DNA of 63,577 nucleotides, filler included, from Pelomyxa schiedti (lineage: Eukaryota > Protista > Evosea): assembly GCA_020536535.1 (NCBI GenBank). It is 5 parts of 5 records of this genome, joined end to end, with 100 filler letters (N's around TTAATTAATTAA, not from the genome) between each part and the next. Parts side by side here need not be neighbours in the genome. Positions count along the whole stretch, not along the records: positions 1 to 20,889 come from JAHLWZ010001081.1; 4 more parts are not named here. One strand, given 5' to 3'. Below are positions 303-12,261 of this stretch, piece after piece. Numbering within the stretch: the stretch's first letter is position 1; each line of letters starts with the position of its first letter. Made by a program: the position numbers and the translations under genes. A model generated the notes under the pieces. It saw only the letters and a program-made list of their open reading frames with translations. It did not search any database and was not told where the DNA came from.

Positions 303-3300
303 TTGTTGAGCTTCGTCTTTTTCCTCGTCCATTCACCGAAATCCACAATCAAAGGAGTCTCGACGCTAGTCACAGGCCAGCCGTCCACCTCGTACAACGG
401 CGAGTGGAAAGACAACAAGATGCACGGCCGCGGAGTGCTGTTCGTGTCGGGAGGGTCGTGCGACAGCGAGTGGAAGAACGGCGTAGCGGACGGGTGGGGC
501 GCCGACTGCCCCCGTCGTGGTGGGTGGTACGAGGGGCTGTGGCGCGGCGGGCACTGGCGCAGGGGAGCACAGCACCACAGAAACGGCAACGACGTGTGGG
601 AGGGCGATTGGGCGTGGGACGACACGGCGAAGGAACACAGGATGCACGGGTGGGGTGTGTGGAGGAAGAGGATGACAAAGGGCGATGACGGGAGATACAC
701 CGAAGCCCAGCCTGCCTCCCGTGGATTCTTTGACTTCTTTGGTGAAGGTGCCAGATTCGTGGATACCCTCAAGAATGCTGTTGTTATTCAAGCGGCGGTG
801 AAGGTTGTTGATGTCAAAGCAGCTGTGAATGCTGAGGCACATGGCAAGCCCGTCAATCTTGAAGTTGGTCGTTCCAAGAAGAAATCCAAGTCATCTTCAA
901 GCAGCAGCAACTCAGGACAAAACAAGGGATTGAAACTGGGTCGGGGCAAGGTTGAGGCCAAGGCTGACGTTAAGGTGGTGGCTGATGTGAAGGCAGATGT
1001 TAAAGTGAATCCCAAAAATGCAACGGAGTGGGTGACAGTGTATGAGGGAGAGTGGAATAACGGGCAGAGGCACGGGAAAGGAACGTGGAGGTCACTCTCG
1101 GGCACAATCTACTGTGGTGAGTGGGACCACAATGTGATGAGCGGAACAGGGAGGATGCTCATTGGTGAAAACGATCCACTCAACGACCCAGGAGGGAGCT
1201 ACGTGGGTGGCATGAGGGATGACAAGTTCTACGGGGAGGGTGAGAGAGTGTGGTCAAATGGTGACAGGTATCAGGGAACCTGGAATGATGGAAAGGAGCA
1301 TGGGAACGGCACGAAGAAGTGGGCCAGGGATGGGTCATCATTCACTGGTAAGTGGGTGAATGGTGTCCCTGTCAATGGCACACTGGAGTGGCCAAATGGT
1401 GACAAGTTCACAGGCACTTTCACGGAGGAAATGAGTTGTGCACAACAAGGTGAGAACCGGATCAGATACTGTGGTGAGGGTTTTCTGTCATTGGATGGAA
1501 ACAACAAATTAAAGGGAAGTCTGCAAGGCAACAACACATTCCACGGAGCTGATGGGGTTACTTCCCACGTTATGGGATCATCCTCGACACAGTTGGTACA
1601 CAGCCCACTCATCCAGGTGTTAACTCTGTTCCCCTCTTATTTCACAGAGTAACAAAAAAAAGAAACTGAAGGAGGAGCACAACAAAGAGAGGGAGACTGA
1701 AAGAAACAAGTGGAACAATGAAAGAACACAACTTCAGGACATGCTTAACACCACAGAAATGAGGCTACAGGCATGTGAACGTTCACAAATTATCCTTCAT
1801 TAACAACCACTTCCAAAAAAAAAAAGGAACTGACCCACGAGAGAGATCAGCTTCAAGAGCAACTACGAGATACAAAAGAACTCCAGTCCAAACAAAAAAA
1901 TGGTGAGGAAGAAGAATGTGATGGGGTGAACACTGCTGGCTCAATACTTGGTGCCGACAAAACAACGCGATCAGAAGCACTGTCTGAGTTGAGCACAGCA
2001 TTCAAGGTGGCCACCAAGTTCCGATCACAGTTGAAAAAAGCAGCACCTCTGTTGGTCTCACTTGAGGAGTCAGTTTCGGGACTGAATCAGTTCTTACAAA
2101 GTGCCACTGAAAGGAACCAATCACTTGAAGTTCACCTCACGGAACTGGCAACTCTGAGGGAATCACTTGAAAAGGTTGAGGAGTCCGACACAAAATGCAA
2201 GGAAATCCTTGGCCAAACACTGACGGGCATGAGCAGCGACTCAGACATTCAGCAGTGCTCCAGGAACATCTCAGCATTAATTCAGAAGCTTCTGGGAACC
2301 AAGCCGTCTTTGCTGTCAGGTTGCACCAACACAGAAGAAGTACAGGAAAGAAGAAGAACACCTGCAGTTCCATCCAAAGGTAAACGTAAGTATCTCTGTT
2401 CTTCTGACAACACACCCAGACATCAACAACTTGATGAAAACAAAACCGTGGTTGAAAACTGTGGAACTTCCTCCTCCACCCTCCTCTGGTACGTCAGAAC
2501 CTTTCACATCAATTCTGAGAGGGATCGCTATCAAAGCATCACTGATTCAAGGAGAATGCAGCAAGTTTGACAACTGTAGAAAGCTCATTGAAGAACACAC
2601 GCTGTTGCGCAAGGAGTGCAATTCACAGGCAACACTGGGCCAAGACCTCGGCAGGGAAATCGAGGAGCTCCTTGCAACATGCCAGGGCACCAATGAGCAG
2701 TACAAAAGCAAATACATGCTGATGAGAGGGCTTGAGGGTGACGAGCAGTTCATGGCACACCCTGATGTGTGGTCTCAGCTCTCTGTGTTACTCCCACGTT
2801 CACTTCAGTCAGTGGTGGATGTCACATTGTCCAAGTGTGCGTCAACAAGGAGCATCAACGAGCAATCACAAGTTCCTAATCCTTCCACCACTGCTGCCAC
2901 AACAGCAACAACAACAAAAGCGCAGCAGCCTGGGTGCACCTCAGAAATGATGACTACGGGAGGAATCATCGGCATGACAACAACAACACCACCAACCCCT
3001 GAGTCAGGGGTGAACAGCTGCTCCAACACAGGAATGGTGATGAGCAACAGCATGGAGTGCATTGTTTGTGATGAGAGGCCACGCAACATCAGGTTCCACC
3101 CTTGTGGTCATGGCGTATGCTGCTCTGAGGTATTATTATTAATTGAAAATTAATTATTTTATCTATCACACAGGGACACACCCCTTCAACAACCAACACC
3201 GACACAACTAACTTGTGTGAACAACCCCACAAATAGTGTGCATCAAATGTGAGGAAGTGTCCATTCTGCCGTTCTCCAATCCAACAGAAACAGAAGTTGT

Positions 3301-7976: not shown

Positions 7977-10515
7977 TCATACACCAAGGAACCACACCCT
8001 TTCCAGCACGAACCTGCACATCTTTGGTTCCGTTGCGCCATTGTTCTCCAGCAAGTCCAGTCTCCAGTACCTGTACTTGTCGTTGTTGTTGTCATCATCC
8101 ACCCTCCAGCACCTCGGCCACGCCTGTGACGTGCAATCCGCCTCCTCGCACTGCAGAACCGGCACCCATAATCGCTTGTGCCCCGGCGGGGTGTTGGTGG
8201 CCGACAGCGAGAATGTTTTGACAGCCTGGGGGTCCCCTCCATCACTTGAACGGTTCTTCATTTGGAATTGGGTAAGCCTCTTAGGTCTCTTCAGGTCATA
8301 CACTATCCAAACAATTCTGTCTGTTGTATTGTATTGTTGGGGTTAGGGTGGGTGCAAAGAAAGAAGAAAAGCTGATTTTGTTTTTATGAGTGGTATGTGC
8401 ATGCGAAGTGTATGCTTGTTGAAGAGTAGTACAGAAAGGGGTGATTAGAGAGTGTGGCATACTTAAAAGAGTGGGGTCAGTATCCATTTTCCTATTTGTG
8501 GGTGAAGCGTAGCTCTGTCCATTGTCCAGCAGTGTGTTGACCGCGGACCAGTCCTTATTAAAAGATTCTGTGGAGGCAATAACCTTTGCATTTAGCACAT
8601 GCTCCCTCATCTTCAGCCTATGCACGCTGGCCTGGAGTGTAAGTACCTGCGACTTTGCAAGTGCCAGTTCCTTTGCCATTGCCTTCAGCTTCCTCCTGTC
8701 ATCTCTCTCAATTAAGGGCGACTTGGGTGCACAATCACTGTCAGCTTTGCTTGGTTGACGTGGGAACCACTTTGAAAACATTGTCTGAAGGGGCTTGGTA
8801 TTTAGGTTCTTTGTGAAGCTCTCAAGTGTTGCACATGGAATCAGTGCATTGCTGTTAATCATCCCCATGGCCTCTACTTGAAGTGAATCCAGCCTTTTCT
8901 TCATTGTGCTCTTCTTCACAAGGTCTGTGTCTCCAATGTTAAGTGCCTTTTCCACTACTTTTTCCAGTCCTGATTTGTACACATCAATGCATTCTTGCTG
9001 TTCTTTCAAAATTGAATCTTAGAGGAATGTTACTCACAGTGACCCAAATGCAGCACATCAATGAAATTGATCTATGAAACTGAAGTGTGAAATTGTATTG
9101 CTGTACCTATCAAGCTCAAGAGTGCTCTAAGTGTCCGTCTAGCTGCATATGCTTGTTGCTTCATGGGAGCTTTAGCATCATCTACATTCTTAAGAATTGC
9201 ATCAGCGTAGCCATGTATATCCAAACGAGACTGTTCAACGTTGTTTATAGCTGCATTTACAACCACCATGCTGTCTTGAAGTTTTGCAATAGAACCTGTA
9301 GCGGCAAGAGAAACTGTAAGCACACCAGCTCAAGCTTTCGTTCTTTTTACTCAGGTCATATCCACACACATACTTGAAATGAAGATTTGCAGCATAAGAA
9401 TACCACTGCTTATGGGAAGGCATTTGTGAGTTGCGTGAACGCCGCCACTCTTGGAACACAGTGAACAAACAGCTTCATGGTCAACATCACAGAACAGATC
9501 AAGGTCTCGAAAGCCGTGAATAGGACACTTCAACACCGGAGCTTCCAGCAGTCCTTCTACCAAGGGTTCCATCTGATAAGGAGTTGAGAAACGAGAACTC
9601 CGGAGCGGATATAAATACCTTGTGTGAGCTTATCTCAGTTCGTTCATGGCGAAGGGTAAAACACTGGGAGCAAAGTTTCATGTTGCATTGTTTGCAAACA
9701 ACGGAAACTGGATTGCAGACACCCTTTTCATTCTTACAAATGGCCAGCATGCATTCCTTTTGCTCTCAGTTAAAATTTGCCCAGGACGTATGAGGGACAT
9801 ACTTCAGGGGCACTTGAAACGAGATTTGACAAATCGGGAACCAGTGATGATGAAACTCCGCAGCTTGGTACAGGGCAATTGACCTTGATTTCGTTTTCGT
9901 CCTGATTCTTATCTTTCTTGCCTGCGGAGGGATTTATTAAAAACACGGTTTCGGAGCCACTGCAGCCATATCGCAATCATTACCATCGACACAGTCCAAT
10001 TCCAGCAGGTTATTTTCATCATCGTAATCGTCGCGCTTTCTCTTTCTGCTCGGATTATCTTCCTCCTCGTCGTCACCCCCCTCCGCCATCCCATAATTCT
10101 GCCGCCCCATCATCGCCACTCCCCTCTCCTCCTCGTTCGCGGCTAGTAGATCGGACATGGCGCGCCGTGCTATCTGGTGGATGCTGCGCAGCGACGCGGC
10201 GGCGGCGAGGGTCCCGTAGCACCCGCGGCACACGACGTGCCCGCACCCCCCCGGGAACACCACAGGGTCCGCCGCACACGGGGCGACGCACACGGGGCAA
10301 GGCCGGGCGAGCGGGCCGCGGGCCTGCTGCGGGAGCGGGGGCGGGGCAGCCGCCGGAGCGAGGGAGAGGGGGTGCCGCGCAGCGGCGGGAGTGGGCAGGA
10401 GGCCGGGGCGGAGCTGCACGGGCAGAGCGAGGATGGACTCGCGATCGAGGGCACCACCACCACCAGGGGCGGGCGCATGGCCGTCGACGGGTAGCGGCTC
10501 CTTGTTGTCTGCCAT
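7977..10515 (-). CDS. TRIM/RBCC-like protein: RING - B-box - B-box - coiled coil - F5/8 type C (discoidin-like) domain
   Basis: RING CPVC..CGHVVCRGC..CPVPSC; B-box1 CKQCNMKLCSQCFTLRH..H; B-box2 CPIH..LFCDVDHEAVCSLC..H..H; heptad-rich region; C-terminal WIVYDLKRPKRLTQFQMKN...YRYWRL...LERVWFLGV*. Confidence 0.8.
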
Positions 10516-10749
10516 GTGGGCACAGGTTCTGGAGATCTTCCTGAATTGATTCCTGGGGAGAATGTCGACATACTCTGACACCCCAGCGATGTGCCACACG
10601 AGGGAAGTGGTGTCTAGCACGCACACAAGAAATGGCGGAATAAAAAAAACACCAGACCGCCAATCGTGAGCTACGAAAATGACAGCGTCCGGTCTGTTGA
10701 TTACTTTATTCAACCAAATCCCTTCTTTTTTCAGGTTGCTTCTCGGGTG

Positions 10750-12261
10750 ATGAGCGACCACGCAGCAACAGCAGGCAGGGAGGAAGGCCGCGCCACGGGG
10801 ACACCCGCCGGGCCCACTGCGGCCTACGCGGACGGGCAACTGAGCGGGCAGGGGGTCCGGGCTGCGCTTGGGTGGGTCGCGGCACCAAGAGAGGGGCAGG
10901 GCGACGGGGGCGAGGGGGGCGAGGGGTCGGGCTCGGCGGGGGGGCTGGGGGGACTGGGAGGGGAGTACGTGGGGACGTGGGGGAGCTGCGTGAGGGTGTG
11001 CCGCCCGTGGCACTCCCTGTTAATCCCCTTGAGAAAAAGTATGCTTACTTATGATTTAGTGTTTTTGCGTTGTGGGCTGGTGGCATCGCTATGTGTATAT
11101 TATTAGAGTGGCGTTGATGTGGGTGTGTGGGATTGGTAATTACTGTGCTATGAACTGTTACTCCCAAACTCTCTTAGGGTTTACTTTATTATCTGAGGAG
11201 TATGTAAACAGTTATATCACGCAGGATTTGTTGGCGTGCTTCAAGCCACGCAATGCACAAGTCCCTGTGGATGACGAGAGAATGGCTTCCATTCTTGACG
11301 AAATGGGTACAAAGCTGCGCGCTCTCAACTTCGGGTACGTTTCTTCCGGTCTGTTCTGACTGGCACTCACACAAATGACACAGAGTTGAATCTGACACTG
11401 GAAGATCAGGATTGCTGCTTCACAAGGCCGTGCGCCGTTCAAGTGTTCGTGCTGTCAGCTTGTTGTTGAAGCATGGCGCAAACCCTCATGTTAAGAGCAA
11501 GCGCGGGGCATCGGCTATGTCTTTGGCTGCTGGGAAAACTGAAATAGAACAACTGCTCGAGAATGCATCCAAGTGCCACACAAAGCCATTGGACCCTCCG
11601 TTCATCCGCATTGTTGTTAAGAATATATGCTACACTCCTGATGACTATTGCCCATCTCCATGCTTCTTGGGTGATGGCAAAGTTACATGCGCACTGACCG
11701 GCGCCTCTCTATGTGTTTCTGATGTGAGACCCGGAATGAAACTGCGCGGGCCGCCTCCACGAAATACTCTCTCTGCCACAACGACGATATCCCAAATACA
11801 CAGAATTGAACGCACTCCCGTAGAGAAGGTGATGCAAATAGCTTTTGTCAACTCTTTGGGCCTCACTCCGGAACATAGAATCGTGACTCCAAAAAAGAGG
11901 TACTTGACGCTTTCCTGCTTGCACGCATTACTCTTTTCAATAACAGAATAAATGATGCTAATGACGAAGAACCTGGTTGGGTAAAAGCTGGTGATGTTGG
12001 GGAACTGTCAAATGTGTTTGTCAAGGAACTTTTCAACTTTGAACTTGAAAAGGTTACGATTTCACCCCCAATGTGCCACAATTCTAATTTCTTTCTTTCA
12101 GGATGAAGACAATGAATCCTCGGCAGTGATGATAAACGACCTGCAAGTTTCCACGTGAGTATTCATCATTCCATCATTTTTTCCTCACTCTCATTCCTTG
12201 ACCACTCAGTCTGTCAACCCCCTTAACAAGAGAACCACAGAGGAGTTCAATTAAACTTTGA
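10750..12261 (+). CDS. Ankyrin-repeat protein fused to a C-terminal Hint (Vint-type) domain
   Basis: Ankyrin LLHKAVRRSSVRAVSLLLKHGANPHVKSKRGASAMSLAA, then CFLGDGKV..VSDVRPGMKL, LGLTPEHRI, WVKAGDV, LFNFELE, AVMINDLQVSTL after removing GT-AG introns 11900-11946, 12053-12101 and about 12156-12209. Confidence 0.8.

Follow-up and report, generated by a model that had tools for sequence, protein, structure and literature searches.

A probable minimal Vint domain behind an ankyrin-like module: a candidate self-cleaving protein of the amoeba Pelomyxa schiedti

Results

Gene structure and transcript

The gene described here lies at positions 10750-12261 (plus strand) of the window, the whole stretch of Pelomyxa schiedti DNA that was analysed (63,577 nucleotides, filler included), and encodes in six exons a protein of 390 amino acids. 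The source is the single-cell genome assembly of this anaerobic amoeba (52.4 Mb in 5337 scaffolds). We derived the gene model from the sequence itself and from an alignment that included two paralogs elsewhere in the genome, on contigs C564 and C642. Its product is identical to Pelo_16096 (P0008 in what follows), the public product of the same contig, C1081, which is annotated as a "hypothetical protein"; whole-protein results below refer to the database entries of P0008 and its paralogs. The exons add up to 1173 nt, which corresponds to 390 codons and the stop (ATG at 10750, TGA at 12259-12261). The exons and the predicted features of the product are as follows.

10750-11038, plus strand: exon 1, residues 1-96 plus one base; Gly/Ala-rich N-terminus with the start codon
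11178-11334, plus strand: exon 2, conserved helical stretch leading to the ankyrin-like module; 3' junction present in an RNA contig
11384-11899, plus strand: exon 3, ankyrin-like module, variable linker and N-terminal half of the predicted Hint domain in a single open frame; both junctions present in RNA
11406-11564, plus strand: putative ankyrin-like repeat(s), residues 157-209, from Pfam Ank, Ank_5 and ESM features
11562-11660, plus strand: linker before the predicted scissile bond, 33 codons, fast-evolving, ending in Ser-Pro241
11661-11663, plus strand: Cys242 (codon TGC), predicted nucleophile, in Hint motif A (P/C-F-x-G, the slash marking the predicted scissile bond)
11865-11876, plus strand: Thr310-Pro-Glu-His313, Hint motif B, kept in all three paralogs
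11947-12052, plus strand: exon 4, middle of the Hint domain with the conserved Trp332 and the motif F-like LFNFEL; both junctions present in an RNA contig
12102-12154, plus strand: exon 5, final strands of the Hint fold (VMINDLQVS-T), aligning to the canonical I-N-G-x-E-C-V-T; junctions present in RNA
12210-12261, plus strand: exon 6, completing Thr374-Leu375, then an unconserved tail predicted to be disordered and the TGA stop

The gene is expressed and spliced as modelled. Introns of 49, 47, 49 and 55 nt, all GT..AG, are absent from single-cell RNA-seq contigs, giving RNA support to four of the five junctions (11334/11384, 11899/11947, 12052/12102 and 12154/12210). The splicing proposed in the original prediction included a small last exon, which changes the end of the product from ...VST to ...VSTLSTPLTREPQRSSIKL; the RNA contigs skip these four introns exactly as predicted, the last one among them, and the transcript is spliced in frame. 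Every peptide stretch quoted in that prediction is found in the sequence. The junction of exons 1 and 2 lies outside the coverage of the RNA contigs; it is placed where the paralogs are conserved and where the public annotation has it. In two further runs of the same study, of unrecorded type and presumably genomic, the stretch is unspliced. The RNA contig shows an A/G difference at 11641 (Asp235 to Gly, in the fast-evolving linker), and so does one of the two genomic runs. RNA editing at this position was rejected because the same G occurs in a DNA run; the difference is allelic.

The surroundings of the gene hold several further elements. Some 35 nt upstream of the ATG, at 10630-10716, lies a MITE-like element. 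It is about 90 nt long and has imperfect terminal inverted repeats of 27 nt. A first pass returned 300 candidate copies in the genome, and the 40 that were scored gave 47 matches at 77-100% identity (most at 82-90%); the word depth of the element exceeds 3000 in the genomic runs. A head-to-head neighbour occupies 9351-10515 on the minus strand, its start codon about 234 nt from that of the Vint gene. It carries a weak RING finger (21.8 bits, at about 10204-10299) and two B-boxes (9616-9741 and 9411-9533, one of them over the cut-off at 36.9 bits), and because of this combination its product is predicted to be a TRIM-like E3 ligase. Two ordinary neighbours lie on the plus strand, an open reading frame with MORN repeats (303-1652, 62 bits) and one ending in a C3HC4 RING finger (2431-3153, 29 bits).

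N-terminal half of the protein

Exon 1 is rich in small residues (24 Gly and 13 Ala in 96 residues) and differs from the paralogs by indels. The highest Kyte-Doolittle mean over 19 residues in P0008 is 1.2; the protein thus has no hydrophobic segment, which argues that it is not secreted. The ankyrin module of the original prediction holds up as a real but faint signal. The ESM Atlas features of residues 97-236 fall in ankyrin clusters only (score 0.92, with few features in common), and the Pfam scores, at 19-21 bits, lie at or below the cut-off: Pfam Ank gives 21.1 bits on the exon alone, equal to its cut-off of 21.1, and 19.1 bits on the full protein. Ank_5 reaches 20.1 bits in P0008 and only 12.6 bits in the paralog. 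Residues 157-209 may thus form a small ankyrin-like module.

Sequence evidence for a Vint-type Hint domain

Residues 241-378 very probably form a Vint-type Hint domain, as the original prediction had proposed. Vint is the top-scoring family for the whole product: Pfam Vint (PF14623) matches full-length P0008 at 27.7 bits, a marginal pass over the cut-off of 27 (E 2.8e-6), and aligns residues 241-382 to positions 1-120 of its 166; the Hog profile (PF01079) stays below its own cut-off. The paralogs remain under the Vint cut-off, with 22.7-26.5 bits for the C564 product (P0002) and 23.1 bits for the C642 product (P0007), and Hint PF01079 is their second-best family. A separate profile, built from 121 canonical Vints with the Pelomyxa trio excluded, is collinear with P0008 across profile positions 4-118 and scores 22.7 bits; 2000 sequences made by shuffling the residues of P0008 reached 6.1 bits at most.

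In the alignment of 124 sequences Cys242 (124/124) and His313 are the sole invariant columns. Motif A of P0008 reads S-P-C242-F-L-G and fits the Vint pattern (P or G)-C-F-x-G, with Pro at position -1 in 79 of the 121 canonical Vints. Motif B (T-P-x-H) has Thr in 99%, Pro in 94% and His in 100% of them. Overall, P0008 shares 15-27% identity with canonical Vints and is identical at 14 of the 31 columns that they conserve at 80% or more, among them C-F-x-G, T-P-x-H, Trp332 and the terminal T-L. By its ESM Atlas features, the Hint N-terminal half taken alone falls among clusters of PT-HINT, Hint_2, Hint, intein and Vint (scores 0.83-0.93).

Searches with shorter queries or smaller profiles gave fainter signals. 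With a profile of the Hint N-terminal half, the best non-self match in the whole genome is a bona fide Vint locus on C222 (E 0.2). Aligned by hhalign to seven local Vints, the same half gives a weak match (probability 16-22%, P about 1e-3) that is in register at Cys1 and at T-P-x-H; an HMM of these seven local sequences gives about 4 bits. Pfam scans exon by exon returned Ank only and no Hint family, and the locus is absent from the matches of six-frame Vint and Hint scans of the genome. A word-index protein search with exon 3 returned one unrelated ankyrin protein only. Sequence searches of the PDB gave no match with the Hint N-terminal half and chance matches (E about 1) with the C-terminus of a paralog.

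Structural model of the domain

The AlphaFold2 model of residues 238-390 of P0008, computed with an alignment of mostly canonical Vints, is all-beta (pLDDT 83.9, pTM 0.77), with its last 12 residues (model residues 142-153) disordered at pLDDT below 50. A single-sequence AlphaFold model of the paralog P0002 reached a pLDDT of 31.6. In a Foldseek search with the P0008 model, the Vint crystal structure of Tetrahymena thermophila (PDB code 8r2c) ranks first (E 1e-5); next come DnaB mini-inteins, the BIL2 domain encoded at the BUBL1 locus of Tetrahymena and the autoprocessing domain of hedgehog. VIA-align also puts 8r2c first and superimposes model residues 2-145 on it (chain residues up to 138 of 169) with Z 14.9 over 121 residues and an rmsd of 2.9. 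The 50 matches listed are all Hint folds. The Z scores are 13.6 for the BIL2 domain and 12.4 for the hedgehog autoprocessing domain (PDB code 1at0), in which model residue 5 (Cys242) falls on Cys258; Cys242 superposes on intein residue 1 also. Since the model leans on the alignment of canonical Vints, the structure is a less independent argument for the assignment than the sequence statistics are.

Paralogs, distribution and selection

P0008 has two paralogs only, P0002 (Pelo_7103, on C564) and P0007 (Pelo_8207, on C642). An exhaustive HMMER search with the Hint N-terminal half detected no relatives beyond this trio among 1.84 billion representative proteins; repeat proteins sharing a K-P-G-M-K-L motif were returned and judged irrelevant. 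The annotations of the three paralogs are inconsistent with each other. The C642 copy (C642:12131-12633, minus strand) carries a frame-shifting deletion of 4 nt in the exon 3 linker. The public model P0007 bypasses the deletion and is unlike the other two in its ankyrin region. This frameshift reflects either a pseudogene or an assembly error, and because of it the trio may be partly decaying. The public C564 model uses another junction of exons 1 and 2, dropping about 20 residues, and ends at a TGA within the unspliced last intron, an intron that the RNA of the window copy splices.

Ratios of non-synonymous to synonymous change (pN/pS), computed for P0008 against the two paralogs, differ strongly along the gene. 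They are lowest in the N-terminal half of the Hint domain (0.18-0.28), followed by exons 4 and 5 (0.29-0.48; exon 4, 0.29-0.37) and exon 2 (0.32-0.39). Exon 1 together with the ankyrin part gives about 0.7-0.8 (exon 1, 0.73-0.79), the tail after Leu375 about 1.1-1.25, and the 33-codon linker before Cys242 about 2.3-2.4 with both paralogs. These values indicate that the Hint core is the most constrained part of the protein, under purifying selection, and that its immediate flanks are free to vary.

Selection of this kind bears on whether the Hint match could be fortuitous, or the gene a decaying pseudogene without function. The frameshifted paralog, the exon-wise searches without a Hint family and the restriction of detectable relatives to P. 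schiedti would fit such an explanation. It is nevertheless highly improbable: the whole product passes the Pfam Vint cut-off, its profile score stands far above that of any shuffle, the transcript is spliced in frame, and the Hint exons are under purifying selection.

Departures from canonical Vints

The domain of P0008 is a minimal Vint, a Hint core without the C-terminal extension of the family. This extension, of roughly 45 residues (Pfam profile positions of about 121-166), is missing. After the fold, 13 residues remain in P0008, while each of 115 canonical proteins has at least 34 there (median 61). The fold itself ends in V-S-T-L-S-T where canonical Vints have C-V-T-L-G-H, in which the His is found in 121 of 121 and the Gly in 113 of 121; the His position (377) is Thr in P0008. 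Further replacements are Arg for Pro314 (100% in canonical Vints), Lys-Ala for Phe334-Pro335 and Met for Asp267. Any of these replaced near-invariant residues (His377, Pro314, Phe334-Pro335, Asp267) could matter for catalysis.

The architecture departs from the family as well. The original prediction had noted that Vint is normally fused to vWA, and canonical Vints are indeed VWA-Vwaint-Vint proteins: among the 120 relatives listed for a Pelomyxa canonical Vint, Vwaint is found in nearly all, VWA in most and a U-box in about half. P0008 has neither partner, VWA and Vwaint giving no Pfam match at E values up to 10.

Such losses would also fit a Hint fold that no longer cleaves and that has a binding or a structural role as the C-terminal module of an ankyrin protein. 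The missing TLGH His, the other replaced near-invariant residues, the loss of the entire extension and a Pfam score barely at the cut-off all speak for this alternative. We consider it rather unlikely, although it is the most serious competitor to cleavage, as Cys242, Thr310 and His313 are kept in three paralogs under purifying selection (pN/pS 0.18) and the Pro-Cys-Phe junction matches the Vint consensus.

Predicted self-cleavage

The Cys at position 1 and the Thr and His of motif B are the residues that Hint domains need for the N-S acyl shift. P0008 retains these first-step residues, with Cys242 in the junction Pro241/Cys242-Phe and with Thr310 and His313, and all three paralogs have them, in agreement with the original prediction that the residues for N-terminal cleavage are intact. 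Active self-cleavage of P0008 is on this basis the predicted outcome, with the balance tipping slightly in its favour. Cys242 would attack the carbonyl of Pro241, shifting the Pro241/Cys242 bond to a thioester, which would then be resolved by water or by a small thiol or amine. The products would be an N-terminal fragment of about 26 kDa (residues 1-241, with the ankyrin module) and a Hint fragment of about 16 kDa; neither splicing nor C-terminal cleavage would follow. Intein-type splicing, which the original prediction had already thought unlikely, was rejected because P0008 has no terminal His-Asn and no C-extein. An N-S acyl shift followed by hydrolysis or thiolysis is the most economical mechanism because the protein lacks an Asn, a C-extein and a region for adduct recognition.

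The original prediction had left a choice between release of the N-terminal module and Hedgehog-style ligation of it to a nucleophile. Release stands as the preferred outcome; ligation is the less likely of the two because the C-terminal extension of canonical Vints is absent. In a ligation, the thioester at Pro241 would be handed to a specific nucleophile, either a lipid or metabolite, as in hedgehog, or a protein amine, and the ankyrin fragment would become attached to it and not merely set free. In favour of this, the hedgehog domain and the Tetrahymena BIL2 domain from the BUBL1 locus are among the best fold matches, and Vint domains here and elsewhere adjoin domains of the ubiquitin system (U-box, F-box, Kelch). 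For the Tetrahymena BIL-ubiquitin-like proteins, transfer to the amine of another protein has been proposed. P0008, however, has no counterpart of the hedgehog region that specifies the adduct, and its fold is followed only by the 13 unconserved residues predicted to be disordered; ligation appears improbable.

Taken as a whole, we regard as probable the reading of P0008 as a soluble protein of 390 residues in which a Gly-rich N-terminus, an ankyrin-like module and a linker precede a minimal Vint domain that would release itself in a Cys242-dependent manner. The original prediction had called this an unusual cytosolic system, which is too strong: a cytosolic location is not unusual for Vint, since Vint proteins have been argued to be processed within the cell (Buerglin 2008, PMC2362128). 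The lack of a signal peptide in P0008 agrees with the intracellular processing proposed there. No report on the biochemistry of Vint domains was found in the literature searched, the 2008 family description (PMC2362128) being the only account of Vint there.

Vint loci elsewhere in the genome

A six-frame scan found about 46 distinct loci over the Vint cut-off, the trio excluded. The eight best score well above the rest, and of the five that were scanned all have Vwaint and two have VWA. At one locus (C529, L018:946-2154, minus strand) an F-box and a Vint domain share one open frame. For 22 weaker Vint loci the 2 kb upstream were scanned; of the 78 open frames there, 11 have Kelch repeats and seven an F-box. 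Linkage within the same gene was seen at C529 only. At several Vint loci (C886, C563, C427 and C387) a Kelch or F-box frame precedes the Vint domain on its own strand by no more than 2 kb, a putative linkage. On C48, an open frame of 569 amino acids (C48:21502-23208, which is L031:3-1709, plus strand) with an NRPS-type Condensation domain (E 1.5e-11) precedes a weak Vint locus by about 1.3 kb. Such a domain is unusual for an amoeba, and gene transfer or a contaminating or symbiont scaffold is possible.

Discussion

The predicted domain combinations look like a lineage-specific spread of Vint onto interaction domains and adaptor domains of ubiquitin ligases. The C529 frame and the roughly 46 loci suggest a burst of domain shuffling akin to that of the nematode hedgehog-related genes, but intracellular. 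A bolder view would make Vint a general C-terminal module that releases or conjugates intracellular interaction domains: ankyrin in the trio, F-box and Kelch at other loci, VWA or U-box in canonical Vints. The trio would be its minimal form, without the extension, and the thioester would serve to conjugate the N-terminal fragment to another molecule instead of merely being hydrolysed. We think this a long shot; if true, it would place a Hint-based conjugation system beside the ubiquitin system.

P0008 is a known domain in an unusual arrangement. Pelo_16096 is already public as a hypothetical protein with a precomputed Vint match. It is not mentioned in the literature searched, and the genome paper (PMC8887013) mentions neither Hint nor Vint. 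What is new is the pairing of an ankyrin-like module with a Vint domain in a protein without Vwaint, together with the truncation of the Vint domain itself. A bare Hint-core Vint on a cargo other than VWA is a simple test case for whether the core alone cleaves, and for the role of the canonical His and of the extension. Vint has, to our knowledge, received less study than the other two Hint families of eukaryotes, and one structure of it has been deposited. Should P0008 indeed cleave itself, such small Hint cores would be of interest to protein engineers.

Comparison with known Hint systems

The closest systems are the VWA-Vint proteins (PF14623, PDB code 8r2c), with which P0008 shares the P/C-F-x-G start, the T-P-x-H motif, the conserved Trp and a fold that ends in I-N-x-x-x-x-x-T-L. 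It differs from them in its ankyrin-like N-terminus in place of VWA, Vwaint and U-box, and in the loss of the invariant TLGH His and of the C-terminal extension.

With the hedgehog Hog/Hint domain (PF01079, PDB code 1at0) P0008 has in common the fold, the superposition of Cys242 on Cys258 and the spacing from Cys to Thr (+68) and from Cys to His (+71); the hedgehog counterparts are Cys258, Thr326 and His329. Neither protein has the Asn, and because no Asn is present only N-terminal cleavage is possible. In contrast to hedgehog, P0008 has Pro instead of Gly at position -1, lacks the sterol-recognition region and a secretion signal, and scores 13.5-16.4 bits with PF01079, below the cut-off of 29.7. 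Without its sterol-recognition region, the 17-kDa Hint core of hedgehog likewise reaches the thioester stage and undergoes cleavage by small nucleophiles, but it transfers no cholesterol.

Inteins and bacterial intein-like (BIL) domains share with P0008 the Hint fold, the T-x-x-H motif and Cys1; the Z scores for DnaB mini-inteins and the Tetrahymena BIL2 are 12-13.6. Inteins differ from it in having a C-terminal His-Asn, a +1 nucleophile and a C-extein; the terminal Asn of the RecA intein has its structural counterpart in Thr374 of P0008, after which an unconserved tail of 16 residues follows.

The nematode warthog, groundhog and quahog families resemble the Pelomyxa Vints, as an analogy only, in placing one Hint-type domain behind many unrelated N-termini in a lineage-specific expansion. 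Theirs is a Hog domain on secreted proteins, whereas that of Pelomyxa is Vint-type and apparently intracellular.
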